Shown here piece by piece: positions 6,405 to 63,413 of a stretch of DNA of 64,000 nucleotides. Position 1 is the stretch's first letter. Every line of letters starts with the position of its first letter. A program made the translations under genes and the position numbers. The stretch is taken from sequence record NC_014636.1; one strand, written 5' to 3'. A model generated the notes under the pieces. It made no database searches, had not been told where the DNA came from, and saw only the letters and a program-made list of their open reading frames with translations.

Positions 6405-9400
6405 ATGGCTTTACAACCGCTACGCGCTACGGCAGGATTGGATGCTGCCGGACATCGCGCTATTAACTTCGGCTACCCTGATAAAACTAAAGGCGGGGAC
6501 GGCGTTAACGTTGATTTCTTCACCTACGAAAACACCATTCAGCCACATAGCCCAAGCAGAACATATCCAAAGGACTTTGCTGTAACATATAACGACCGCA
6601 TCTATATTAGCGAAGTCGAAATTACAGCACCGGAGCCTTTCAATCTTAACAAATGGAAAGCGACTCGCGTTGACCCATCATGGCGAGTAGTTACATCGAC
6701 TGCTAACTTGCAGGGTAACGTTCGTCAAGGTGAATACATTCTATCTCAGATTGTAGGCGCAAACTCAGTATACACTATGCCGTTCGATGCTGCAAACAAT
6801 ATTCCAGCAGCGGGCGATACCGTAGTTATCAAAGACAACGGATTCGCTACCCACGATTATGAAATCGTAGTAAACGGCAACGGCAAAAAAATCAACAATC
6901 AGGCAACACATCGCATCACACTATCTGGATCTACCACTGTATTCATTTACAATGGTACCGAGTGGGTTGCTCAGTTGTGGGCACAGGGAGATTCTAATCG
7001 AACTTATGTTAGTTCGACAAGCTATATTCCCGGTGAAAACTTCTTCCGTGCTAAGGTTGGCGATCATCTTGTCCGCGAAACTCAATACGGCGGTGGCATT
7101 CGTATTCGTCTTCCTCGTTATGCAAACCATGGCGATACCATTGTAACATACGATTTGGATAGATTGAATCCACTTACTAAAACTGAGTTTTTCGTTTACC
7201 CAAACAGTAACCATAAGATTCTAGTTGGCGTAGGCGAAACACCAGTTGACAGTGCCAAGTTTGATAGCACCGGTTGGGGTTATTTCGTGTTTGACGCGAG
7301 AATTAACCAGTGGCGCGTTTTTGATGCAGACACCAAAGCTCGTTGGAACATGATTGAATCCAATTATACAGCTATTCTTGGTGAAAAACTAGCGGTACAC
7401 GCTGCAAATGCAACAGATACAATCACCGTAACGTTTCCTCAAGAAGCATCCAACGGCGATAGCTTTATCATCGATACAAGTTATATGGTACAAGGTTCTA
7501 AGATCACAGTCAAGATCCCGGACGCACAAGCTAACGATTATATCGTTCCAGACGAAAATGCACTTGGTACTCCATATGTTAGTAAGTATCGCGACATTGT
7601 TAAAGACCTGACTAAGTTTACAACAAAGACAGAGACTTTCACAATCGACGGTCGTTCCCATCAATGGGAATTCACTTACTTCCGAAATGCACTGGGAACT
7701 GGTCTTGATGTTTGGGTTTTGATCTCCAACACACCAATGCCATTCAGAGTTGATCGCAATGATACATCATTTGTTGGTCTAGCGGCAATCGCTACACAAG
7801 TAGAAGTAAACAAAAACAAAGAGCAAATTACAACTGGTCAAAATCGTGATTGCGAAGCATTTGTAACACCAGAAACCCTGAGTAACAAAGTCGCCACACA
7901 GACTAACCGTGGTATCGCTCGATTGGCAACTGATGCTGAATCAAAAGCAACAAGCGGTACAACCGAAGCTTGGAACAGTGTAATCATGACTCCGGAAAGA
8001 GTCAACAACAGATTGGCAACTGAGACCATGCGTGGTGTTTTGACTGTAGCAACACAAGCACAAGCTAACGCAATGAGTGGCACCGGTGAAATGTGGGCAC
8101 AGACTGCAATCACTCCAAAAGTGCTGGATGGTCGCAAGTCAACCGAGACACAAACCGGTATTACTTACCAAGTTATTCAGGCTGGCGCAAAACAAGCAGA
8201 GCGTGGTACTAAAGGTGTAGGTGTTCATGATTTCGACGAGCATTACCGTTATGTAACACCAAAAGTTTTGTTCGAGAAGGTCGCTACCGAAACTTCTCAA
8301 GGTATGGGATTCGTCGCTACTCAACCAGAAACTGACGCTGGCACAGATAACCATGTTAATGGTCCGTTGCTCGTTACTGCTAAGACTCTGCAAGGACGTC
8401 AAGCTACGACAGCACTAACCGGTTTGTCAAGAGCTGTTACCGATGCGGAAATGAGTTCAAATACTCCTCCAACTGGCGATAACATTCATGTTACACCGGA
8501 TGCGATTGTTAAGCGTACTGCAAACGAAACCCGCTGGGGTCTAGCAGAAACGGCAACACAGGCAGAAGTCGATGCTGGCACTTTGCATGATCGTTGGTTT
8601 GTAACTCCAAAAACATTCGGAGTATGGTTGAATGGTACACGGTTAACAGTTGATGTGTCAAGCGGTTTAACCACTGCTGGTACAATCTGGGCAGGACAGA
8701 GTTTTAATATCGTAGAATCAACCGAAACACAACGCGGAACATTGCGTACTGCAACACAAGCAGAAACAAACACAATGATTAATCCGCTTGATAACGTGAT
8801 GATTACGCCTAAGAAATTGAACGACAGAAAAGCAAGTGAAACCCTGACTGGTATTATTGAGATCGCGACTAAGGCAGAATCCGACGCTGGCACAGATGCA
8901 ACTCGCGCAATGACTCCAATTCGTGTTCTTGATTCTATGCGCACAAGCGCGAACCACAGAATGAATGAATCTCGTTATGGCGTTGGTATGATGTGTGTTC
9001 TGGCAAATGATGCAAGCGCGAATACAGTGTGGCAAGGTGATGATATTCAAGGATCAACTCGCCCAGTTGGTCAATATGCAACGGATAATATCGTTGTTAG
9101 TCCACGAGCACTGAATACCGCATTAGCTCATTATTTGCCCCTTCTAGGTGTTGCCGAAAGTTCACGTTCTATGGATACAGCAGACGGCACAAGAGTTAAA
9201 GCCGATGATTGGATTCGTCGTACAGTTGCACAGACTATTACCGGTGGTATGAAGTTTACCGAATCTCCAGTTATTGAACGTGCAAGCGTTGTTAGACTTG
9301 ATATGATTGCAACTGGTGGCAAACAAGATACCGCAATTATGTTCAGAAACAGCACCAATAAAAATTGGTGGGCAAACGGCGTTCATGTTATTGACGGTGC

Positions 9401-14134: not shown

Positions 14135-14159
14135 ATGAAAACTAACATGAGGATTAGAA

Positions 14160-17100
14160 ATGGCAGATCTTAAATTAGGGTCTCAGATTGGTGGAAATCT
14201 AATCTGGCATCAAGGAATTCTGGAATTAAATCCTGTTGACGATAAACTATATTATCAAGATCAGGAAATGATGACAACTAGAGGCAATCAAACTCTACTG
14301 GGTGCAATTAAATTCGGTACTCCGAATGATATGTACGATATTGAAAGTATGAGTGATGGGGCAGGCGGAATTAAGCGTTATCTACGTAAGTTTAGATCTG
14401 GTGCTACATCTACTATTTGGCACGAAACTATTACCGATCGTTTATACACAATTTCAACCGGTGTTACTGATACCGCTCCACAATTCACGTTGAATAACGG
14501 TGATAGTGCGACGTTTCAATATCCAGTATTAACTAACAGTCCACAATCTGGATTGGGGAATGCATTAGCAAGAAAAGATTATGTTGACTCTATTGATGCG
14601 AAAAACGTTGCTAAAGCAGGCGACACGATGTCCGGGGATTTACTTTTTAACTCAACAGCAAGAAAAATTCGAGTTAACGAGATTGCTAGTATTACATCTG
14701 GATGGGATGCAGCTGGTAATTCTACCTTTTTCAAATTGGGTGCTTATGATGTATCAAAGGGTGGCGACTTACTCGAAATAAGAGCAGCTGGTGCTGGAGT
14801 TGGAAACAGAACATCTGGATTCGATGTCAGAACAACAAAGAACATTTCAAATACACCGCTTTATGTTGGCGACAACATGGTTTATCATCCGGGAAATAAA
14901 CCTACTCCGGGCGATATCAATGCATACACAAAATCCGAAGTAGATGAAAAACATTGGATTCGAGTAAAAGACGAACGTGCCGCAATGATTGCGCCAAACG
15001 TATTACCAAAGAGTACAATGGCAGCTTATTTCACAAATCAAAGCGACGTTAGTTCTAGCTGGGTTTCTGGATTCACTGTGAATGGCTGGGATAGCACCTA
15101 CGCAGCTTGGTCATTGTTTGCTGGTTCACGTTCAGACGTCGATCAAAATCAGTTATGGTTTAAGCATGGTCGTTCCTCATGGCTTCCTAGCTCAAGAATC
15201 TATCACGAACAAGATAAACCAACAAACGACGAACTAAATCTGGTATCTCGCGCTGGCGATAGCATGACCGGTGTTTTGAACATGAAAGTTACTGATAGTA
15301 TGGGATTTGGAAAGTATTCTATCAGAATGAACAACGGTTCTATTGGTGGATTAAATCAACTGGTATTCGGAGATCCATCCGATACTACATCAGAAGGTAT
15401 TGCTTGGCCGAAGACCGGCAAAAATGATAGCGCGACAACAAACGCAGAATACGATTTGTTGTGGGCACTTGATGGTGATTTAAAGTTCAATAATAAGAGT
15501 ACATACGGCGAGTGGAATAAACCAACAAACGAAGATCTAAATCTTGTTTCCAGATCTGGGGATTGGATGAATGGTAAACTGGAAATTAGAAATGCTGAAT
15601 TTGAAGTAAAACATAATAACGTTAGACGTGTTATTACTCGTCTTGGTGTGCAAAATGATGCCAAACCATTCATGGTGTTGATTTGTCCAAAATACGTAGG
15701 CAAAGCATTACCGAAACGCGGGTTTGTTGGTCGTGTTACTTTCGAACGTGGAGCAACCACTTCAACTCTACAATCACAGTATGTTGACATTTCTGCTGTT
15801 ACTGCATACACGGCAACCGATGCGCAGATTCATTATGCTAGTTACTATGCTAATGTCAAACTTGTTTATCACACTCACACAGACGGTATCGAATATCTGG
15901 CATTGTATCGTAACATTCAAAGTTCTGCTACTGTGTTCATAGACGGATATTTGTATGGTTCCGAAGAAATGATTGTTATTTCGGATGCAACTGGATTAAC
16001 TGTCACTGATGTTTCAACCAGAGAAAGAATCTATAGTTCTGGTAATAAACCAACAAACGAGGATCTAAATCTGGTATCTCGCGCTGGCGACACAATTACC
16101 GGGGATCTTGTGGTTAGTGGAAAAATTACGGTATCTAAAGTATTACTATCTGGCGCACAAGGGACAGAAGAAAACGCATTAACTCGTAAGGATTACGTAG
16201 ATACTAAAGTAGGTACCGCAGTTCAATCGGTAACAGCTACCGGCGCAGTCAAGAGCACTGGCGGTATTAATCCAGTAATCAGCTTGGTAAATGCAACAAC
16301 AACAGAAGATGGCGCAATGTCTGCTGCTGATAAAGCCAAGTTGAATGGACTTCCTGCTGCTGCTGTGAATAAGACTGGCGATTCAATGACTGGTAGTTTG
16401 ACTTTCACAAATGATAGTCAACTTGTCTGGAGTAGAAACACCGATTGGGCTAAGATTGGATTTAAAAACGATTCCGACTCGGATGCTGATAGTTATATGT
16501 GGTTCGAAACTGGAGATAACGGAAACGAATATTTCAAGTTTAGAGTTAAACCTACTGGTTCTACTACATCGGAAGATGTGTTTTTAATAAAAAGAAACGA
16601 AACGAGATCCAACGGTAGATTTTTTGTAGATCCATCAATATCAGGTAGTGATTTAATTACGTTGATTGGGACACCCAATCCAACCGGAACTAATGCTCGT
16701 GGTATAAGTGGATATGAATCAACAGGCACAACTCGTGAATGGGGTGTAGGTGCATATTCAGAAAATGGTGTGATTTTGTATTCCTATTTGGGATTCGGAG
16801 AAACTCCATGGAATAATGGAGTTAAAATATACGCAGATAAAGTAGTTTCTCCAACCTCGTTCAATGCTCCTGATTTTATTCAGACAACACCGCAAAGTAG
16901 TGTAGCTGGTGCGAGTACAAGAAAGGATTATGTTGATACTCAAATTGCGGCAATAGACGCGAAAAATGTTTCTAAAGCTGGCGATACTATGACTGGCGAA
17001 TTGACTATGCCTAAGGTTAAAAGTGCGTTAAACTTGTTGGACAAAGCCAGTATTAGGTTTGCAGATCTGACTAACACTTGGTTCCATATATATTCAGAAG

Positions 17101-18101
17101 GAAATCAGTTTAAGATCAGTCAAGGAACTACTGCACAAACAAACGTATTTGCAATAAACAGCAACGGTGATATGGATATTGCGGGTTCGACTATTTCTAA
17201 GTATTTTAGAACTGATGAACTAGGAGGAACTAATACAGTAGCTCCATTTGCGAGTAAATCCAGTGGTGGTTCTTATGCCGCGATGTATACTAGATATGCT
17301 CCATTCCATACTGATGTTGTGCAAACTGGATCATCTTATGCTCCTAATGCTTCAATCAGATATACACATAACGGCACATACGCTGGTATGTATTCGACTG
17401 GTGTTTTGTGTGAGAGTGCAGGAACTCCTGGTAAATATACTATTCATCACATTAACCAATCTGCTGGTTCATCCAAAGTTTGGAGCTTTGATGGTAGTAC
17501 AGGTAGATTTACTGCTGATGGTCCTATTAGTTGTACCAATATTGATGTAAATGACGTTATTAGCGGAGAAAATTTACATCTTACTGGAAATATTAGACTG
17601 AACAATAGTGCTCCTACTATTACCATGCAAGATACCGATCACATGGGCGCATTCTTGCACACAAATAGTAATAACTTCTATGTGTTGAGATCTCCGACTG
17701 CGAATAACGGAAACTTCGATAGTGGTCCAGGTGGTGTTCATCCAATGACATTAAACTTGTCAACTGGCGATGCACAATTTAGCCGCAACGGTAGCTTTAA
17801 CGATGTTCAGATTAGATCTGATATTAGACTGAAATCTAACTTCGAACCAATCTTGAATGCTGTTGATAAAGTTTGCACATTGAGCGGTAAGACATTTGAT
17901 AAAGTTGGATGCGACAAACGAGAAGCTGGTATTATTGCTCAAGATCTTGAGAAAGTATTGCCAGAAGCGATTGGTAGTTTTAAAAATACTGCTGGTGAAG
18001 AGTATCTGACTGTTTCTAACTCTGGTGTTAATGCACTATTGGTAGAAGCTATCAAAGAACTTAAAGCCGAAATCGAAGAACTTAAATCTAAACTTAACTA
18101 A
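14160..18101 (+). CDS. Distal long tail fibre 1 (gp36-gp37 fusion-like) with C-terminal peptidase S74 intramolecular chaperone
   Basis: N-terminus MADLKLGSQIGGNLIWHQG matches the T4 gp36 start pattern; RKDYVD and AGD.MTG fibre repeats; C-terminal SDIRLK...REAGIIAQDLEKVLPEA plus coiled coil. Confidence 0.85.
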   Translation: MADLKLGSQIGGNLIWHQGILELNPVDDKLYYQDQEMMTTRGNQTLLGAIKFGTPNDMYDIESMSDGAGGIKRYLRKFRSGATSTIWHETITDRLYTISTGVTDTAPQFTLNNGDSATFQYPVLTNSPQSGLGNALARKDYVDSIDAKNVAKAGDTMSGDLLFNSTARKIRVNEIASITSGWDAAGNSTFFKLGAYDVSKGGDLLEIRAAGAGVGNRTSGFDVRTTKNISNTPLYVGDNMVYHPGNKPTPGDINAYTKSEVDEKHWIRVKDERAAMIAPNVLPKSTMAAYFTNQSDVSSSWVSGFTVNGWDSTYAAWSLFAGSRSDVDQNQLWFKHGRSSWLPSSRIYHEQDKPTNDELNLVSRAGDSMTGVLNMKVTDSMGFGKYSIRMNNGSIGGLNQLVFGDPSDTTSEGIAWPKTGKNDSATTNAEYDLLWALDGDLKFNNKSTYGEWNKPTNEDLNLVSRSGDWMNGKLEIRNAEFEVKHNNVRRVITRLGVQNDAKPFMVLICPKYVGKALPKRGFVGRVTFERGATTSTLQSQYVDISAVTAYTATDAQIHYASYYANVKLVYHTHTDGIEYLALYRNIQSSATVFIDGYLYGSEEMIVISDATGLTVTDVSTRERIYSSGNKPTNEDLNLVSRAGDTITGDLVVSGKITVSKVLLSGAQGTEENALTRKDYVDTKVGTAVQSVTATGAVKSTGGINPVISLVNATTTEDGAMSAADKAKLNGLPAAAVNKTGDSMTGSLTFTNDSQLVWSRNTDWAKIGFKNDSDSDADSYMWFETGDNGNEYFKFRVKPTGSTTSEDVFLIKRNETRSNGRFFVDPSISGSDLITLIGTPNPTGTNARGISGYESTGTTREWGVGAYSENGVILYSYLGFGETPWNNGVKIYADKVVSPTSFNAPDFIQTTPQSSVAGASTRKDYVDTQIAAIDAKNVSKAGDTMTGELTMPKVKSALNLLDKASIRFADLTNTWFHIYSEGNQFKISQGTTAQTNVFAINSNGDMDIAGSTISKYFRTDELGGTNTVAPFASKSSGGSYAAMYTRYAPFHTDVVQTGSSYAPNASIRYTHNGTYAGMYSTGVLCESAGTPGKYTIHHINQSAGSSKVWSFDGSTGRFTADGPISCTNIDVNDVISGENLHLTGNIRLNNSAPTITMQDTDHMGAFLHTNSNNFYVLRSPTANNGNFDSGPGGVHPMTLNLSTGDAQFSRNGSFNDVQIRSDIRLKSNFEPILNAVDKVCTLSGKTFDKVGCDKREAGIIAQDLEKVLPEAIGSFKNTAGEEYLTVSNSGVNALLVEAIKELKAEIEELKSKLN

Positions 18102-30246: not shown

Positions 30247-32445
30247 TTATTTTACAGCAACTTGAACAATGTTTGTCGCAGTTGCATCTGGGATACTATA
30301 TACGGAGTTGGTATAAGCGACGATCAGAGGGTTATTCTTCTCGAACTCTTTTACCTTAACGTATGCGATATCATACGCTTTTCTTTCCAGTTCTGCAATA
30401 GCATCATGCAGACTTTTGCCGTTTGTCAGCTTGAGATCTGACATAGAATTCCGAGCACGACGCAAGAAATTACCGATCTCACTCACTTTGCCGTTATTAC
30501 AGATCTGATCTACCAGCGGCTTGGTGATAACGTTGCTTTCGAGACGACCAACCCAACGTTCCATGACTTGCACACCAAAGTGGGTTTCGTCAACGGCATC
30601 GGCATGTTTCAGAACATCAAACTGGATAATATCCTGAGATACCTGAGTGATATTCTTGTTCTTCCATGCACGTTGGAAGTGCGTAGGCTTGAACATATAA
30701 ACGGTTTTCTTCTCTACAGCAGCCCATTGAGAAATCAGCTCAGAGCTATACAGATTCACGCTCTTCCAATCGCCAAACTTCTCTTTGGTCTTACCGGATT
30801 TCAGAGTCTCGATGGTAATTGTCGGAGTAACATGACGCGGATTGCTCCACTCATAGCCCATCCAATAACAATCTTTCAGCTCGTCGATGTCTTCCACGTA
30901 CATCTGTTTTTCTTTGTAGATGCCATTTTCGTACACGACCACGTTAGTGGCTTTACCGGTACGCTTCTTGACTTCTACCAGACCCTTGTCCTTCATTTCT
31001 TTCAGAACATCGGCGCGAACTTTGGACAGAGTGACAATCATTTTGTCCTTCATCCGAGTCGGCCAGTATCCCAGGTAATGAATCAAGTTTTCTTTGTACG
31101 CATCACCGATTGTACCACGTGATGGGTCTTTCTTGTCGATTGGCGTAGTGTTGGCTACGTCAAACACCAGTGCACCTTCGACTCGGAACTTGTTCAGACG
31201 ATGCAGAGCCATCATAACTTCGCCAGCTCCGGATTTCAAGTCGTTAATGATTACACGCTTGAAATTGGCATCAAATCCAACCATGTTGCTGGTATAGCGG
31301 ATCTTGTTTTTGCGAACAGTGACACCAACGCTTGCATTCTGCAAATACACTTCCGTGTTCGGACGGGTATAGCTATTGAAATGCGCTTTCCACTGTTGGA
31401 TAGTCTTGCCGTGGAACACACGATTTTCGATCATTCGGCGCCATACGTCATGCGGCAGTCTGCCGTTGATTGACTTATACAGCTCGAATATGTCATTGGA
31501 CTTATCAAAAATCTTGTCAATTTCCACATCATGAACTTTGTTCAGAATCTTGATTCGCTTGTCAATAGAAGCGATGGTATCAGGGTCCAAACTCAGTTCT
31601 TCGCGGCTCGGAGTCATATCAAGTTCACCGATTTCGAAGCGAACGTAATAAGACTTGTCTTTAGCAAACAGCCCGATCATGGTGTTGTTCCAGTATTCGC
31701 TCGGGATTGGGTAAACTACACCACCCATAACAGCGAACACACCGTTACCATGTTGTGAGCGAGTATTCCAGCCACCTTCTACCTTACAGATACCATCGGC
31801 ATCGAAATCCAGGTAGTTGATTGTGATCGACTTACCAACGAAACGAGGACGATATTTCTCGAAAGAGCAGAATACGCGGGCGGCTTCTTGTTCCCAAGTG
31901 TTCATGTCATTACTAACAGGTACGGTAACTTCAACACCAGTCGGCTCGTTGCTTTCTTCTTCGAACATTTTCATGATGTTCGGCTCGCCGTTCTTCATGA
32001 ATGCGCTGTAAATGCGCTTGAATCCGCCGTGCCAGGAAGTCACTGTGAACGTATCGGTATACGCAAACGGAGACTTACAACCAAGACCGAAACCACCGAT
32101 TTCATCGTTACTGTTCGACTTGGTACTTGCAAAATAAGTGCAGTACAGCCCGGTAACATCTTCCTCACTCAGACCAATACCGTAATCACGGACGCTGAAT
32201 TGTTGGTTCAGTACACTCGGCAGAGTAACGTCGAAAGTAGTCTTAACATCTACCCCAGTGCGAGCCAGAGCGATATGACCGTCTACCGCGTTGCAACACA
32301 GTTCACGAATGATGGCGCGTTGCTTGTACTTATACAGAGAACTGGACAGAATCTTGAATGCTTTTGCACTAGCCAGAATTTTGAATCCAGAACTCATGTC
32401 CGCGGCGCTGCCGTAGATCTCGGTTTGTTCCTGATGAATTTTCAT
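30247..32445 (-). CDS. rIIA: rIIA protein (GHKL ATPase N-terminal domain)
   Basis: AFKILSSSLY..K.RAIIRELCCNAVD, RDYGIGLS, IGGFGLGCKSPFAYTD. Confidence 0.96.
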   Translation of the reverse strand: MKIHQEQTEIYGSAADMSSGFKILASAKAFKILSSSLYKYKQRAIIRELCCNAVDGHIALARTGVDVKTTFDVTLPSVLNQQFSVRDYGIGLSEEDVTGLYCTYFASTKSNSNDEIGGFGLGCKSPFAYTDTFTVTSWHGGFKRIYSAFMKNGEPNIMKMFEEESNEPTGVEVTVPVSNDMNTWEQEAARVFCSFEKYRPRFVGKSITINYLDFDADGICKVEGGWNTRSQHGNGVFAVMGGVVYPIPSEYWNNTMIGLFAKDKSYYVRFEIGELDMTPSREELSLDPDTIASIDKRIKILNKVHDVEIDKIFDKSNDIFELYKSINGRLPHDVWRRMIENRVFHGKTIQQWKAHFNSYTRPNTEVYLQNASVGVTVRKNKIRYTSNMVGFDANFKRVIINDLKSGAGEVMMALHRLNKFRVEGALVFDVANTTPIDKKDPSRGTIGDAYKENLIHYLGYWPTRMKDKMIVTLSKVRADVLKEMKDKGLVEVKKRTGKATNVVVYENGIYKEKQMYVEDIDELKDCYWMGYEWSNPRHVTPTITIETLKSGKTKEKFGDWKSVNLYSSELISQWAAVEKKTVYMFKPTHFQRAWKNKNITQVSQDIIQFDVLKHADAVDETHFGVQVMERWVGRLESNVITKPLVDQICNNGKVSEIGNFLRRARNSMSDLKLTNGKSLHDAIAELERKAYDIAYVKVKEFEKNNPLIVAYTNSVYSIPDATATNIVQVAVK

Positions 32446-46762: not shown

Positions 46763-47344
46763 TTACCATGAACGAATTGCGCGTTGAATCTTTTCACGCT
46801 CAGTTTTTGTTGGGATCATAGTCAAGCACGGTGCGTTGACATCAATTACAGTCGGAGAAAACATTTTCTTTAGCCGACCGATTTGTTCTTCCGTAAAGCC
46901 CGCGATGTATTCACGCGCTCTCGAAATGGAAACTTCGTAATACTCAGAAACAAGATATTCGAATGCACGAAGTTCCCAGTCGCCAGTTATCTTGGCGAAT
47001 TTTACCTTTGGTAGACTGCATTGTCGGATCGTGAAATACATATAATCATAATGCATTTGATCTGAAATAAAGCCTTCCATACTGTTAAGCTCGGAAGCAT
47101 AACCACTCATTGTAACGTGCTGTGATAGCGCGTTATTGATCATATGTTGATCGTAATCGCTGAAACGTTCAACAGTGCCGTGGCCTAGCTTCTTGGTAAC
47201 GTTATCGATAATCACGAACAAGCTTTGCTCGGCAGGAACTTTAAACTGCTTGCTCAATTCTTTAACAGCGTCCCAATCTCTGGAACGCCATGCGATTTCG
47301 TGTTCGTTTAGATCTTCTTCATCAAGAAACGCGGCTAAGCTCAT
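46763..47344 (-). CDS. 62: Clamp loader small subunit gp62
   Basis: EHEIAWRSRDWD, MINNALSQH, MHYDY; synteny 44-62-regA. Confidence 0.92.
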   Translation of the reverse strand: MSLAAFLDEEDLNEHEIAWRSRDWDAVKELSKQFKVPAEQSLFVIIDNVTKKLGHGTVERFSDYDQHMINNALSQHVTMSGYASELNSMEGFISDQMHYDYMYFTIRQCSLPKVKFAKITGDWELRAFEYLVSEYYEVSISRAREYIAGFTEEQIGRLKKMFSPTVIDVNAPCLTMIPTKTEREKIQRAIRSW

Positions 47345-48313
47345 TTACTTCCACTCCATTTCCATGCTCAAATCAGCAAGCAGATCGAACAGATGGATTT
47401 CCATATTCGGGATATCGTTCGCGAACTTCTGATTTTCAGCGATATATTTGATCATCATGCGAATACTTGTCGGCTTGATTTCCAAGAACAGACGTTCATA
47501 CAGCTTTGTGATAAAGCTATCATAATCGACGGTAAACTTCGGAACAAGTGCGCGAATATCACCAAGCTTTTTATTCTTGAGCATGGTAACAACGTCATTC
47601 ATGTCCTCGACTGCTTGAGTCGCTTTAGTCAAAACGCCTTCATCGATCTTACCAGATTTTGCATAACTATCTAAGGTTGTGATTGTACCGCGAACATCAG
47701 GAAAATTCTGTTTAACCAATGCGGCGATAGCTTTACGAGATTCTACAACAACGCCTTCCATTTCGCAAATCTTTTCGCATCGAACGATCATTTCTTTCAT
47801 CATTCGAATTTTGTCATTTGCAGTCGGATTACCGAACTCAACTTGACGGAATCGAGATTTCAGAGGAGCCGGAATCGCTTCAACGTTGTTACATGTCATG
47901 ATCACAGAGCAGTTAGAGCTAAACGCTTCCATCCAAGAACGGAGTTCTTCATGAACAGCTTTCATACCCTTGTTATCACCTTCGTCGATGATGATAACTT
48001 TGCCACCCGGCTTGCTTGTCATGGTAGAAGCGAAGTTGGTCAGATCATTACGCAAATCGTCAATGCGCAGTTTGCCACCGGAGATAAACATAACTTCGGC
48101 GTCGATCTCGTTACACAGAACACGTGCCATGGTAGTTTTACCAGTGCCCGGACTCTTGGAGAAGAGGAGAATATGAGGAATTCGACCACTCGCAACAATG
48201 CCACGAAAACGTTCGGCATCAGCGTCTGGAAGAATACATTCGGAGATAAGTGCGGGACGATATTTTTGTTCCCACATGAATTCTTTTGGATCAGATACAG
48301 TTACAACAGTCAT
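47345..48313 (-). CDS. 44: Clamp loader large subunit gp44
   Basis: WEQKYRP, SPGTGKTT, IIDEGD, SRF; likely start MTVV at 48313. Confidence 0.96.
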   Translation of the reverse strand: MTVVTVSDPKEFMWEQKYRPALISECILPDADAERFRGIVASGRIPHILLFSKSPGTGKTTMARVLCNEIDAEVMFISGGKLRIDDLRNDLTNFASTMTSKPGGKVIIIDEGDNKGMKAVHEELRSWMEAFSSNCSVIMTCNNVEAIPAPLKSRFRQVEFGNPTANDKIRMMKEMIVRCEKICEMEGVVVESRKAIAALVKQNFPDVRGTITTLDSYAKSGKIDEGVLTKATQAVEDMNDVVTMLKNKKLGDIRALVPKFTVDYDSFITKLYERLFLEIKPTSIRMMIKYIAENQKFANDIPNMEIHLFDLLADLSMEMEWK

Positions 48314-53248: not shown

Positions 53249-53271
53249 AAAAAGGCTCCCGAAGGAGCCTT
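53249..53271 (-). terminator. Intrinsic terminator after the disrupted fibre gene
   Basis: GGCTCC-TTCG-GGAGCC plus T-run; same stem as the gene 32 terminator. Confidence 0.85.
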
Positions 53272-53275
53272 GTTA

Positions 53276-56227
53276 TTAAGCAAGTTCTAATCTATGTGGT
53301 AGATATTGCACAATAGGTGAGCCGCTAAGACATATGTTATTGGATTGTGTTGCTGTTCCTGTGCCAATAAATGAAGTAGCACTATAAACTGGAATGACAC
53401 CACCACCTCCGGGAAATGCCCAAGCTGAACCGTTCCAAAACGCAAGTCCAACCATTAATGATGGTATTTCTCTTTGTGCGGAAGTATCCCAATATTTCAT
53501 AGGACATACTGTGATCCAATGAATGTTATTTGCGTTGTCTCTACCTAAGCAAAGCTTAAAGTATTCGGTTGCACTTCCGGTTGGTGCTGGGGTTGTTCCC
53601 GATCCGGAAGTTAATGTTGGGTCAACGTCTGATAATGCCATACCGTTAATAGCGTTTCCGCCAAATCTACCCGCATTCATCATAGCTGGAACTGTGTTCA
53701 TAACTCGACCAGCTTCACCCAACAGACCATCGAATGTATTATCGTTGTCTATTGTGCCGCACAGATATGTATTAAATTTCTGATACAAATACCATGCTCT
53801 AGCCTGTTTCTCTGCCGCTGATTCACCAACTTTAAGAGCCACTGCCATTGAGGACAAATCGCCTATAAACGTCGCAAAATACCAGTCTGTTAGATGTTTA
53901 CTAACATCATAATTAGGGTTAATAACGTCGCGAGTCCAATAGTTCTTTGGATCATTCGGACTAACCACTATTTCTGATGTAGTTACTTTGGAGCTACCCA
54001 ACTGTTTGACAATCGCATAACTAGAACCAAGTGATGGGTCATCCGCATAAATTGTATGACTACCACCAGTATCGTATGTTACTCTAACTTTTACGTCCAT
54101 ATCAACGGAAGGGGTAATAACAGTTCTTGCTATGTTTTGTGGTGCAAAGTTTTCGGTTGATGGTGCAGCAACTTTAGCACCAATTGTTCCTGATAATCTG
54201 ACGTTATTGACATCATGCCAAGCATATGCAAAACGACCAGAACCGCCTATATTAGTGAATACATCGGCCAATAGTTCATATGTTTTATTTGCTTTTAAGC
54301 GGAATACTCCGTTGTTATTAACTACTTCGCCAATAGAAACTACATTTGAGTTAAATGGCAGATCGTATTGTGTACTTGTACCAGCACCAGTTAAATTAGT
54401 TGAAAGTTTTGCCATCAAATAATCGACTCGATCACCCTGTAAAATAACAGTGTTTCTAGCGTCGATGATTTCATCGCCTGAAATTTCTTCAACTAGAATA
54501 TAACTATCACCAGCATCACTTGTTGTATCCAATCCGCCACGAATGTTATGCGAATTACCGGCATAGATACAACGCATTTGAATGTCGGTTTGTACTGTTG
54601 TGTCAATAAACACAATACCAGTTCCGTTAGGCCCATAACCAGATGTACCAGTTGAGTTACCCTGCCAATGCGATGCATATGATTGGTTGGGTTGCCACGA
54701 TGCGGTTGTTACGTTAAAAATACCGTATCTAACCCAGTTACCGGATGTAACACTAGCGGGTTCCATCTTGAACGTAATTTTATACGTGCGTTTTTCTCTG
54801 AGTGTTATTGTGGCTCCATTACGAGTAATGTTATCACCAACAACTTTATTTGTGGTATCCAACGACCATACGCTATTTGTAGTCATACCGGTTTGTTCTG
54901 AGTTTCTTGTTGCCAACATCATTGAACGTTGTGTTGTAGAACCACCCGCAGTTGTCTTTAATTTTTCCAATACAAATTGGTAGCGTCATATTCATACACA
55001 TTTTTCGAAACTGTGGTTGTAAATGTCTGAGCATTTGTCGGCGATGTCGGGAACGTAATTGTTTCCTTGATACCATCAAATTGCGCATAGCTATTATCAT
55101 TGCGATGTAACATCATCAGTTTTAATTCTGTGTCGTAATATTCTTTTGGTGCATTAACTGGCTTGACATAAGAATTTGTTTGACGGCCCGATTTATTCAT
55201 CAATGTCGTTGTTGTGTCATTAATGCGTACCCATTCTTGTCCGGCGTTGAAAATACTACCAGGACTAACTGCTTTTATACATACCCACACGTTTTCGGAT
55301 AGACCGTAAATTACCAACGATCCGGTCGCATACGCCTTTGAGATTTCAAATCCATGAATAACAGTATCGTCGGTCTTTGTCATGTAATCGATTAAAGCAT
55401 AAGCGGGGTGCCGCCAATAAACGGAATCCAAATCGAACGATCTAATTTGATTGGAGTTGCTGCATTCAATGATTGTGTTGTATTTGAAACACACATATAC
55501 AATGTCATGTCACTGTCTGTTAATGGCAATTACATCGGCGAAATTATAATTTGTGTTAGTTGCAGGAACGACACCACGCCATACTGGTTGATATCTACCA
55601 GCATTAATAACTGGTCTGAATGTAGCTGTGTTTCCTGAACCCCACGCAAACGGAGTACCAGCGACAATAGCGGCATTCGCTTGTGCAATGATACCAGCAT
55701 AGCTTACGATTGCATTTGCATCATACGACAGTGCGGTACTATAGCTGGGCGCCTGCTTGAATCCAGTGAGCTTGGTGAAGTAATTCAGTTCGGAGATTGC
55801 TTTACCTGTGTTCGCGATAGATGCGCGATATAGGTCAGTTCTGTAATAGAACAAGTCTCCTTTTGCGATCACTTTATCCAAGAACGGGTTATATTCGTCC
55901 CAATCTGGTATGTTAGGCACCTGTGTTGCAGTTGTCAATTCGTGCCAATGTGTTGCCAATACTCCAATAACGAATGGAGTATTCGCTGGCATGTCTCCAT
56001 TCGCACGATACAGCTTACTGTCGCGATAGCACAAATCGTCTTTGCGCCAAGAACGTGCCTGTTCCCAATCAGGCACGTTGGCAGTCAATGCTGCTTCTGG
56101 AATTTTCCCATTACTATCAGCAACAATGATATTTGTTGCTGATGCGTCTACCCAGCTTCCGTCGTTCCATACTTTTTGGAACATTCGTTTTGGATGGTTG
56201 CGTTACTAACGCAAGTCTTTCTGCCAT
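53276..56227 (-). pseudogene. Disrupted late gene for a ~983-aa carbohydrate-binding fibre or decoration protein (track ORFs 55510-56184, 54958-55494, 53276-54970)
   Basis: In-frame TGA at 55510-55512 inside a repeat module; A5 frameshift at 54962-54966; probable A5 frameshift at 56173-56177; CBM5/12-like and C1q/TNF-like repeats. Confidence 0.7.
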
Positions 56228-56257
56228 TATAAAATCATCTTATTATAATTCTGTTTA

Positions 56258-56264
56258 TATTTAG
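56258..56264 (-). promoter_or_regulatory. Putative late promoter (CTAAATA) for the disrupted fibre gene
   Basis: 31 nt upstream of ATG 56227, directly after a terminator; same layout as the fibre 1 and fibre 2 genes. Confidence 0.55.
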
Positions 56265-56267
56265 AAA

Positions 56268-56295
56268 ACAAAAAGGGAGCCGATGGCTCCCTTTA
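56268..56295 (-). terminator. Terminator after a-gt.4
   Basis: AAAGGGAGCC-ATC-GGCTCCCTTT plus T-run. Confidence 0.75.
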
Positions 56296-61214: not shown

Positions 61215-63326
61215 TTACATATGTTTGACACGACGCTGGACTTCGTCCTGTTTGCCGACGTTAAATGCGCGAGATCCAGGGTTACCCAAATACCCACAGA
61301 CGCGACGAATAACGTTCATCTTACGGTCATCGTGATTGCCACACTTCGGACATTCGTATCCTTTAGAAGTAGCGGTAAACTCACCGTTAAATCCACATTC
61401 AAAACAAACATCAACTGGAGTGTTTGTTCCATAGTACGGAGTGTTCCGATAAGCATAATCCCAAACTGCTTCGAGTGCTTCCAGATTGTGTTTCATATTC
61501 GGATATTCACCGTATGAAATGAAACCACCGGTACTAAGCGGAATGAATTGCTTTTCAAAATCGATCTTGTCATACGGATTTGTGTTCATATCCACAGACA
61601 GATGGAAGCTGTTTGTGTAATAGTCTTTATCAAACACCTTGTGCTCATACAGAGCGTGATCGATCTTAGCGAAACGATAACACAGACTTTCAGATGGAGT
61701 GCCATACAGACTAAACGCCAGTCCAGTTTCTGCTTTCCACGCATTAGCCATTTCTTTCATGCGAGACAATACGTCCAGCAAGAATGCTTGTTTCTCGGCG
61801 TTTTCCATAACGTGCGATTCATCGTTGAACTTGATGATCTCAGATACTTCATGCAATCCAATATAGCCAATGCTAACAGATGCGCGACCATTTTCAAATG
61901 CTTTCATGATGTCATCATTTGGTTTCAGACGAACACCACAAGCACCTTCAACATAAAGAATCGGAGCAACGCTTGCCTTGACACCACGCAGACGATCAAC
62001 GCGAGTCAACAAAGCTTTCTTAACGATTTCCATACGCTCTTCCAGAATTTCAAAGAAGCGCATTTGATTGCCGTTTGCGTCGAGTGCGATACGCGGCAAG
62101 TTCAGAGTAACAACACCGAGATTGTTTCTGCCTTCATGAACTTCATTACCGGTTTCGTCTTCCCAGCGATGCAAGAAACTACGGCATCCCATAGGGAACT
62201 TAAAGCTACCAGTCACTTCTACCACTTTATCATAACTCAAGATGTCTGGATACATACGCTTGGCAGCGCACTCCAGTGCCATCTGTTTGATACGATACAG
62301 AGGATCAGTTGGTTTCAAGTTGTGTCCGTCTTTCAGCGCGAAAACAAGTTTCGGGAAAACGGGAGTAATACCTTCTTTGCCAAGACCTTTCATCCGAACT
62401 TTCAGAATTGCTTCCTGAATGAGTTCGGATTCCCAGCTAGTGCCTAGTCCAAACCCGAAAGTGCAGAATGGAGTTTGACCATTTGCCGAGTGCAGAGTGT
62501 TTACCTCATACTCTAGGCTTTGCATTGCATCATACACGGCTTTGCGAGTCTTTTCAATAGCGTATTGCCTTTGATCTGGAATTTTCCAATAACGCGCTTC
62601 ATCCAAATGCTTTTCATGTGTCATCTTAACATAAGGTGCCAATGCTTCGTCAATGCGATTAATTGTGTTGCCACCATAAATGTGACTTGCAACCTGTGCA
62701 ATGATTTGAGCAGTAACAGCCGCAGCGGTAGCGATGCTCTTAGGAGTTTCGATCTGTGCATTACCCATGCGGAACCCACGCTCTAACATGCCGTTGAGAT
62801 CAATCAACATGCAGTTAAACATTGGGAAGAACGGAGAGTAATCAAGATCATGGAAGTGAATAAAACCAGCTTCGTGTGCTTGCAGAACTTCGGTCGGCAG
62901 ATAGTGCTTTGCAAAGTGCTTGCTTACTATGCCCGCGACTAAATCGCGTTGTGTCGGAATAACTTTTGCATCTTTGTTTGCATTCTCATTCATGATCCCT
63001 TCGTCTTCTTGCTTCATCAGTCCGACGATTCGCTTGGTCATATCGCTGTTCATATCGCGAGCAACGTCACGATCATAGCGGTATTCGATGTAGGCGCGAG
63101 CCACAGCAGGGTAACGGGAGCGCATTAGGGTATCTTCAACAACGCGCTGGATCTCTTCAATCGTTACGGTGTTGCGTCCAATCAGCTTTCGAACTACTGC
63201 TTCCGTAGCGTGATGCGGGAATGTTGGATCGGTGATATTGATAGACTTGAGGGAGTTGGAGATTGCTGTTTCAATAAAAGACTGGTCGAAATTAACGACT
63301 CGGCCGTCTCGTTTTTGTACTTGCAT
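61215..63326 (-). CDS. nrdD: Class III anaerobic ribonucleoside-triphosphate reductase, uninterrupted
   Basis: N-terminal ATP cone, ENANKD, IHFHDLDY, PMGCRS, YYTNS, C..C...C..C Zn site, RRVCGYLG. Confidence 0.98.
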   Translation of the reverse strand: MQVQKRDGRVVNFDQSFIETAISNSLKSINITDPTFPHHATEAVVRKLIGRNTVTIEEIQRVVEDTLMRSRYPAVARAYIEYRYDRDVARDMNSDMTKRIVGLMKQEDEGIMNENANKDAKVIPTQRDLVAGIVSKHFAKHYLPTEVLQAHEAGFIHFHDLDYSPFFPMFNCMLIDLNGMLERGFRMGNAQIETPKSIATAAAVTAQIIAQVASHIYGGNTINRIDEALAPYVKMTHEKHLDEARYWKIPDQRQYAIEKTRKAVYDAMQSLEYEVNTLHSANGQTPFCTFGFGLGTSWESELIQEAILKVRMKGLGKEGITPVFPKLVFALKDGHNLKPTDPLYRIKQMALECAAKRMYPDILSYDKVVEVTGSFKFPMGCRSFLHRWEDETGNEVHEGRNNLGVVTLNLPRIALDANGNQMRFFEILEERMEIVKKALLTRVDRLRGVKASVAPILYVEGACGVRLKPNDDIMKAFENGRASVSIGYIGLHEVSEIIKFNDESHVMENAEKQAFLLDVLSRMKEMANAWKAETGLAFSLYGTPSESLCYRFAKIDHALYEHKVFDKDYYTNSFHLSVDMNTNPYDKIDFEKQFIPLSTGGFISYGEYPNMKHNLEALEAVWDYAYRNTPYYGTNTPVDVCFECGFNGEFTATSKGYECPKCGNHDDRKMNVIRRVCGYLGNPGSRAFNVGKQDEVQRRVKHM

Positions 63327-63352
63327 TTGTGTTTCCGTTGTGAGTGTGAAGG

Positions 63353-63380
63353 AAAAGAAAAACGAGTCTTTCGACTCGTT
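63353..63380 (-). terminator. Terminator upstream of nrdD
   Basis: AACGAGTC-GAAA-GACTCGTT followed by a T-rich run. Confidence 0.7.
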
Positions 63381-63413
63381 TGTATTGTACTGCTATTTAG
63401 AGTGTAGATAAAC

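Follow-up and report, generated by a model that had tools for sequence, protein, structure and literature searches.

phiAS5 (NC_014636/HM452126) is a 225-kb T4-like phage of Aeromonas salmonicida, placed in the genus Chrysonvirus. On the minus strand of its genome, the GenBank record lists four 'hypothetical protein' coding sequences (CDS), ORF0153-0156, flanked by the region of the late sigma factor gp55 on one side and by gp47/gp46, the genes for the recombination nuclease, on the other. The question raised by this locus is whether they stand for separate proteins, for one large protein that the phage still makes by an unusual route, or for the remains of a gene that no longer works. Our study analysed a 64,000-nt stretch of the record, hereafter the window, to which all coordinates refer (window position = record position - 62000); in it, the four CDS occupy 53276-56227, and the span 53200-56300 matches phiAS5 at 100% identity. 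An initial annotation, made from the letters of the window, had described this interval as one large late gene split by a TGA and by two A5 frameshifts of opposite sign, and had proposed decay, phase variation, or recoding as the cause. According to our sequence comparisons, 53276-56227 is one single late gene of ~980 codons and not four genes, and it is very probably a pseudogene: inactivated recently by ordinary gene decay, it would once have encoded an accessory tail-fibre or receptor-binding protein of ~982 aa.

One gene with four frame breaks

The interval from 56227 to 53276 measures 2952 nt, or 984 triplets, exactly the number of codons given in the initial annotation. The tblastn search that had been suggested as a check for intact orthologues of ~980 aa, run together with BLASTP on phage genomes, retrieved Aeh1p027 (NP_943905) of Aeromonas phage Aeh1, an intact protein of 964 aa whose gene lies directly upstream of gp47. 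The open reading frame (ORF) pieces of phiAS5 are collinear with Aeh1p027 (77%, 42%, and 48% identity), and when the five segments between the breaks (18, 218, 37, 147, and 561 codons) are joined with an X at each break, the translation contains zero internal stops and aligns with Aeh1p027 in a single high-scoring segment pair (residues 1-985 vs 1-964, 54.7% identity). Both the N-terminal motif and the C-terminal QYLPHRLELA of the Aeh1p027-type proteins are present in the phiAS5 copy. Instead of three separate proteins with conserved boundaries, the relatives encode single intact proteins of 832-995 aa. The lesions were placed by DNA alignment with relatives, among them the sister phage phiWae14, and the four indels (+1, +1, -1, and +2) all fall inside the first 1.27 kb of the gene. 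From start to stop codon, the segments and breaks are as follows:

56174..56227, minus strand: segment 1, the true start codon and first 18 codons (MAERLALVTQPSKTNVPK); 72% identity to Aeh1p027 residues 1-18
56173..56177, minus strand: lesion 1, an A5 run with one surplus A (+1); aligned, phiWae14 has A4 and Aeh1 has GAAA
55519..56172, minus strand: segment 2, 218 codons, stop-free; 77% identity to Aeh1p027 residues 18-241
55518..55519, minus strand: lesion 2, one surplus base (AAC-A-GAC) outside any homopolymer; frame switch relative to Aeh1
55510..55512, minus strand: TGA, an out-of-frame stop; in the orthologue frame its bases belong to the codons AGT and GAC
55407..55517, minus strand: segment 3, 37 codons (ORF0155), stop-free; matches Aeh1p027 ~242-281 in this frame only
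55405..55408, minus strand: lesion 3, a C4 run with one base lost (-1) in or beside the run; ACC CC_ GCT vs ..GTG CCA GCA in Aeh1
54964..55404, minus strand: segment 4, 147 codons, stop-free, CBM5/12-like repeat 5 and linker; 42% identity to Aeh1p027 residues 247-425
54962..54966, minus strand: lesion 4, an A5 run, most likely with two surplus A (+2), -1 being possible; TGG AAA TTA AC in Aeh1 and a prophage homologue
53276..54961, minus strand: segment 5, 561 codons and stop; 48% identity to Aeh1p027 residues 427-964; the prophage proteins P0002/P0003 are 62-64% identical to it

The ATG at 56227 encodes the conserved N-terminus MAER..LVTQP.K...PK, and the phiWae14 CDS begins at the equivalent ATG. 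It had been proposed that removing one A from the A5 run 56173-56177 joins this codon to the reading frame, and the alignment confirms a real +1 there; an indel census against phiWae14 likewise marks one extra window base at 56177. Segment 2 carries the conserved N-terminal anchor, the CBM5/12-like repeats 1-3, and part of repeat 4.

The TGA requires a different interpretation from the one that it had been given. It is literally true that the ORFs 56184-55510 and 55494-54958 lie in one frame and are split by the TGA at 55512-55510 (..INRQ*HDIVYVCFKY), but this description is incomplete, as it overlooks the frame shifts of lesions 2 and 3. Homology to Aeh1p027 changes frame three codons ahead of the TGA and is back in the original frame 111 nt later: frame A reads ..DVIAIN and frame B DSDMTL.., where Aeh1 reads DVIALNDSDITL. 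Around the stop, Aeh1p027 (..DVIALNDSDITLYMCYVISTQTLNSTNTIKLDMTKWMPLVGNVPAFGL..) fits the other phiAS5 frame, which is that of the annotated 38-aa ORF0155 (TDSDMTLYMCV...IPFIGGTP vs NDSDITLYMCY...MPLVGNVP in Aeh1). Since homology lies in a different frame across 55518-55405, the TGA is a by-product of lesion 2 and not a nonsense mutation; what had been taken for a nonsense or readthrough site is a stop exposed by the lesion 2 frameshift, after which lesion 3 follows. The region does lie inside a repeat, described earlier as Y..G/D.V......YVC, the motif of which is W..Y..GD.V...G.LY.AN.DIP.GTPF.

At 54962-54966 the frame break is real. As first described, one added A fuses the frames there, and the third ORF has a TTG start without a Shine-Dalgarno (SD) sequence; this TTG is at 54970, in the -1 frame. 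The size of the change was probably misjudged, however: the sequence is TGG AAA TTA in Aeh1 as well as in a prophage homologue, so that lesion 4 is likelier +2 (A3 to A5) than -1. The two A5 lesions are thus probably +1 and +2 instead of opposite in sign.

A repeat search found no meaningful DNA repeats in the region. When proteins are clustered at 90% identity, each of the four annotated pieces stands alone, and no near-identical intact allele was found in IMG/VR (which returned only the phage itself), in these clusters, or in JGI contigs; an exact-pattern scan of JGI metagenome contigs with a 28-mer beside lesion 1 gave no match.

Expression signals

Four signals frame the gene:

56272..56294, minus strand: intrinsic terminator belonging to ORF0157, the gene upstream; it sets the 5' boundary of the transcription unit (10-bp stem with 6 GC pairs, T run)
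56258..56264, minus strand: CTAAATA, an Aeh1-type late-promoter motif within TCTAAATA; invariant in phiAS5, phiWae14, and Aeh1
56228..56257, minus strand: 5' leader without a Shine-Dalgarno sequence; phiAS5 reads ..ATAAGATGATTTTATA-ATG, with extra bases relative to phiWae14
53252..53271, minus strand: intrinsic terminator closing the transcription unit (8-bp stem and T run), 5 nt past the stop codon

CTAAATA is the published late-promoter consensus of Aeh1 (PMC1524935), which makes the designation 'late gene' reasonable; with the end-to-end homology to Aeh1p027, it bears out the earlier description of one large late gene. The window holds three further copies of CTAAATA, each followed by a strong SD and an ATG, and the count of the motif in the window is no higher than chance. 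A GAGG lies 7-9 nt ahead of the ATG in phiWae14 and Aeh1 but not in phiAS5, and the internal 'starts' of the pieces all lack an SD. A functional Aeh1p027-type member would have an uninterrupted ORF and a ribosome-binding site, and the phiAS5 copy has four breaks and no SD. The four indels are of the replication-slippage type, and together with the loss of the ribosome-binding site they would abolish translation past a 36-residue N-terminal peptide, which is likely the sole product to be expected.

Evidence that the lesions are real

Two freshwater-metagenome runs from 2025 contain Logan contigs of 151-229 nt, at a depth of 2-4, which match the window at 100% identity. A 151-nt contig (55352-55502) spans the C4 run of lesion 3 gaplessly with more than 50 nt on either side, and a 229-nt contig (54943-55171) is identical over its full length across the A5 run of lesion 4. 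Contigs of both runs also record one departure from the GenBank sequence:

55284..55286, minus strand: G3 run, one base shorter in environmental relatives

This loss falls inside the conserved ENVWVCIK motif of segment 4, a motif identical in P0002, and constitutes a fifth frameshift in the environmental relative. Since both runs lack one G at this site, their reads do not derive from the GenBank record. Otherwise the two runs agree 100% with the original phiAS5 isolate across ~1 kb, the difference being one indel and zero substitutions.

As a control for assembly quality, we aligned the whole window to phiWae14 (LC778249), covering 59.6 kb at 92-98% identity. The sole uncompensated coding frameshift in this census is lesion 1 of the 53276-56227 gene, in agreement with the earlier claim that no other gene in the window is broken. 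Compensated indel pairs occur in the hypervariable parts of the gene at 14151-18101, with one pair each in 30247-32445 and 61215-63392, and isolated 1-nt indels are intergenic or at a gene junction. The chance that four random indels over ~58 kb would all strike a 2.95-kb gene is, by our own arithmetic, (2.95/58)^4, roughly 7e-6. A concentration of four indels in a single gene of 2.95 kb, against none in the remaining ~55 kb, points to relaxed selection and not to random base-calling errors.

Two further observations came from this alignment. At 47343-47345, the clamp-loader gene pair abuts in phiAS5 and has a 1-nt spacer in phiWae14, a harmless junction indel. The plus-strand gene 14151-18101 (~1300 codons) shows dense compensated small indels at 14320-14501 and 17878-18075, and an unaligned gap at 15526-17786 holds one 639-bp block of 92.7% identity; the pattern resembles that of hypervariable segments, and the gene may encode a long tail fibre.

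Nature of the encoded protein

Several lines of comparison suggest that the gene product was an accessory tail-fibre or receptor-binding protein. All family members share the N-terminus MAER..LV.QP.K...PKVW.(N/D)G.W. The homologues P0002 and P0003 lie in two Aeromonas prophages, where they close the late operon and immediately follow a gpJ-like Phage_Tail_Tip protein and a fibre-like protein of 760 aa; this is the classical position of the side tail fibre gene and places them within a tail/fibre module. A family profile matches the long tail fibre gp015 of Agrobacterium phage 7-7-1 (PDB 9RKV) with E 3.6e-6, over the repeat motif only; the region matched is the N-terminal, baseplate-anchoring part of gp015, which shares W..Y..GD.V...G.LY.AN.DIP.GTPF. 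This structure was not retrieved by a single-sequence search, and a C-terminal profile gave no match in the PDB; outside the shared repeat motif, no relationship to the family could be detected for the beta-helix and the C-terminal jelly-roll of gp015.

Counted by eye, the W..Y..GD.V repeat is present in five copies in the N-terminal 400 residues. The paralogue avDM12_26 reaches 62.8 bits with Pfam CBM_5_12, which is a pass, and one of its adjacent repeats can be aligned with repeat 1 of phiAS5 (E 8e-8). At the PF02839 gathering threshold, the phiAS5 pieces and Aeh1p027 gave no hit, and P0002 scored 13.5 bits. The phiAS5 repeats would accordingly be described as CBM5/12-like, this copy falling below the family threshold. 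Pfam, PHROGs, and NCBIfam returned no significant family for the phiAS5 pieces or Aeh1p027.

Segment 5 probably comprises two C1q/BclA-C-like domains and a conserved C-terminal domain that ends in QYLPHRLELA. The two former come from ESM-Atlas leads below the reliability mark; within the C-terminal piece they cover residues ~13-330, with a TM by row of 0.66-0.84 over short domains and a pLDDT of 0.52 for the query model. In scans of GTDB and JGI contigs with the C-terminal profile, the middle domains of this piece (residues ~7-330) have distant relatives at 26-41% identity, found mostly in metagenome-assembled genomes of freshwater Bacteroidota (Sediminibacterium, Chitinophagaceae, Cytophagaceae; GTDB L009-L021, JGI L022-L023).

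The partner gene and turnover of the cassette

The gp55 region-gp47 locus is common to phiAS5, Aeh1, avDM12-TAAL, and the metagenomic contig L027. Upstream of the intact copies, either adjacent or one paralogue away, a gene of the p029 type is present in five of the five intact contexts:

Aeh1: p029 + p028 + p027
avDM12-TAAL (from the genus of phiAS5): 768 + 625 + 686 aa
Metagenomic T4-like contig L027: 890 + 995 aa (P0006), then gp47
Two Aeromonas prophages (A. hydrophila and A. dhakensis): a 760-aa protein, then P0002/P0003 (849/848 aa)

The p029-type proteins have 760-890 aa and begin MPFI..GGGSG..SLV, with an N-terminus like that of annotated tail fibres of Salinivibrio and Vibrio phages. 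No match to them was found anywhere in the phiAS5 or phiWae14 genomes. Proteins of the p027/p028 type probably dock via their common N-terminus onto the p029-type fibre; once this partner was lost, the phiAS5 copy would have become useless, or its loss would have been favoured, and the gene would since have been drifting. The phiAS5 gene is probably the last remnant of a multi-gene fibre cassette between gp55 and gp47.

The relatives of phiAS5 tell of other losses at the same site. phiWae14 shares 97-98% identity with phiAS5 on the upstream side of the locus and about 93% on the downstream side, and has ~610 bp in place of 56143-53279. This insert (L004:6950-7559; LC778249 140264-140873) holds ORFs of 102 aa and 108 aa in different frames, overlapping at 7233-7258, which match the N-terminus (66%) and the C-terminus (39%) of Aeh1p028. 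It appears to be an internally deleted, frame-disrupted remnant of the p028 type, so that the locus would be dead there too. In Ah1 (L024:6992-7336), the fibre cassette is reduced to a 345-nt ORF that is 96.6% identical to the C-terminus of the 768-aa protein of avDM12-TAAL. We conclude that the gp55-gp47 locus is an accessory fibre cassette, lost by different routes in different lineages.

A gene of another kind is flanked by fibre genes. Aeh1p026 (L002:7711-8262) and its counterpart in avDM12-TAAL (L005:9108-9659) are 183-aa ORFs with a Walker A motif (GIPGAGKT), labelled 'clamp loader' in Aeh1, an annotation that is probably wrong. The two are 96.7% identical, whereas the flanking fibre genes are only 30-75% identical, and the gene, which may be a recent transfer, is absent from phiAS5 and phiWae14.

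Age of the inactivation

None of the residues that are invariant among four intact homologues has been lost from the 564-aa C-terminal piece. Tajima-type relative-rate counts for two ingroups and two outgroups (48:51, 48:45, 53:56, and 54:46) show no acceleration in phiAS5, which indicates that inactivation was recent on the scale of the divergence of the family. By our estimate, the presence of four to five indels and the absence of nonsense substitutions agree with a brief phase of neutral drift.

Alternative explanations

It is important to consider that the breaks could be sequencing or assembly artefacts, the real phage having an intact gene and the indels being base-calling errors. Three of the four lesions do lie in homopolymer runs of 4-5 nt, and lesions 1 and 2, in a record that dates from 2010 (HM452126), have no independent reads. 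We nevertheless regard an artefact as very unlikely: the metagenome contigs reproduce lesions 3 and 4 exactly, lesion 2 is outside any homopolymer, the SD has been lost as well, and 59.6 kb of alignment with the 97%-identical phiWae14 shows no uncompensated coding indel elsewhere, so that the assembly is not generally error-prone. The same runs could be read as a reversible switch in which changes in run length toggle the fibre in the phage population, and the additional G3 to G2 change at 55284 in the environmental relative would agree with such a view. Known contingency tracts, for example the polyG tracts in receptor-binding genes of Campylobacter phages, have about 9 nt or more, whereas the runs here have only 3-5 nt (4-5 nt at the lesions) and no long hypermutable tract was found; the two that could be checked, at lesions 3 and 4, have the same length in independent samples taken ~15 years apart. 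The homopolymer switching considered in the initial annotation would further require four lesions to revert together, one of them outside any run, in a gene that has also lost its SD, and the 55284 change adds a break and removes none. Phase variation is for these reasons highly improbable. Equally slim is the chance that the gene is 'leaky', with low-frequency intact alleles or run slippage giving traces of full-length fibre; if this were true, a few virions would carry an extra receptor-binding fibre, as bet-hedging on host range, and the 55284 change would be part of the dynamic.

Programmed recoding, by which frameshifting at the A5 and C4 runs, TGA readthrough, or both would yield the full-length protein, is not without sequence features in its favour: as read from the letters, a tRNA-Lys on A5 can re-pair in +1 or -1, CCC-C permits a -1 slip, and an 11-bp hairpin (fold z-score -2.4) lies downstream of lesion 1. 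The hairpin is a perfect inverted repeat at ~56117-56144 on the minus strand, within the coding region (ATCAGCAACAA, a 6-nt loop, and TTGTTGCTGAT). It starts 29 nt from the lesion and is not conserved in Aeh1, and +1 shifts use no such stimulators; the other three lesion sites have no significant downstream structure. Rfam gave only sub-threshold hits on terminator hairpins and no element, and no tRNA genes, suppressor or otherwise, were found in the window. Recoding would call for four independent events of differing sign, one of them at AAC-A-GAC, which is not slippery, and no conserved slippery site with a spaced stimulator was identified; the relatives are unbroken at all four positions. 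Readthrough of the TGA would give unrelated sequence, the homology beyond it being in another frame, and initiation itself is impaired by the missing SD. The tail assembly chaperone G/GT frameshift and the T4 gene 60 bypass, which likewise involve an interrupted phage late or structural gene, are single, conserved sites with slippery or take-off sequences and stimulators, all of which are absent in phiAS5. Recoding, another of the early proposals, is thus extremely improbable. Other candidates were tried and rejected: a compensating +/- frameshift pair restoring function (the shifted frame runs into the TGA three codons on), translational bypass (the bases that would be 'skipped' show homology of their own in another frame), and insertion of an intron or homing endonuclease (there is no extra DNA relative to Aeh1). 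Gene fission is the case in which the pieces, such as the 564-aa C-terminal one with its putative receptor-binding domains, remain functional as separate proteins. GenBank lists the pieces as CDS, and piece 3 retains all the invariant residues with no rate acceleration, but this lack of acceleration is equally expected after a recent inactivation. None of the pieces has an SD (piece 1 starts at an ATG without one, piece 3 at the TTG within the preceding ORF), piece 3 lacks the N-terminal anchor common to the family, and such boundaries occur in no relative, all of which makes fission unlikely.

The reading that the evidence favours is decay of the gene with loss of a virion appendage, as the initial annotation had considered. 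Certain points weigh against it. Lesions 1 and 2 are known from the 2010 GenBank assembly, with independent read cover at neither; the metagenome contigs are short (151-229 nt) and of low depth (2-4), and both runs come from one study. The co-occurrence of partner and intact gene is a matter of 5 vs 3 genomes, which are phylogenetically non-independent. The proposed fibre function draws on synteny, a single weak match of the profile, and Atlas leads that fall short of the reliability mark, and we found no virion proteomics for any family member.

Comparison with known systems

Aeh1p027, P0006, and P0002/P0003 resemble the phiAS5 copy in their N-terminal motif, their CBM5/12-like repeats, and their C-terminal QYLPHRLELA, and the position directly upstream of gp47 is the same in phiAS5, Aeh1, and contig L027. 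They differ from it in being single intact ORFs accompanied by a p029-type partner, whereas phiAS5 has four breaks, no SD, and no partner. The closest parallel for the loss is the side tail fibre gene stf of laboratory lambda, where a frameshift splits the gene into orf401 and orf314; under plaque-like selection, 19 of 21 lambda isolates carried stf mutations, and 15 of those 19 were frameshifts (PMC2762979). Both cases would concern a dispensable accessory fibre, lost by small indels and annotated as separate ORFs, and in Aeromonas prophages homologues of the phiAS5 gene hold the stf position after gpJ. The lambda gene has one frameshift, whereas the phiAS5 gene has four and the loss of the SD, belongs to a T4-like myovirus, and has no sequence homology to Stf. 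The loss in phiAS5 may be seen as analogous to that of lambda stf, and a selective cause of the same kind is something that we only infer here.

Implications

These results provide evidence that ORF0153-0156 are fragments of one dead gene, for which pseudogene would be the appropriate annotation. In Aeromonas T4-like phages, the junction between gp55 and gp47 stands out as a hot spot that carries an accessory fibre cassette, lost through frameshifts in phiAS5, internal deletion in phiWae14, and near-complete deletion in Ah1. The cassette is also present in lambdoid Aeromonas prophages, with about 63% protein identity across morphotypes; fibre modules are well known to pass between unrelated types of phage. 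The mechanism of the loss is ordinary and not new, and the value of the case lies in annotation, in host range, and in the turnover of fibre cassettes. Aeh1 and avDM12-TAAL may carry extra receptor-binding fibres, which bears on the choice of Aeromonas phages for aquaculture.

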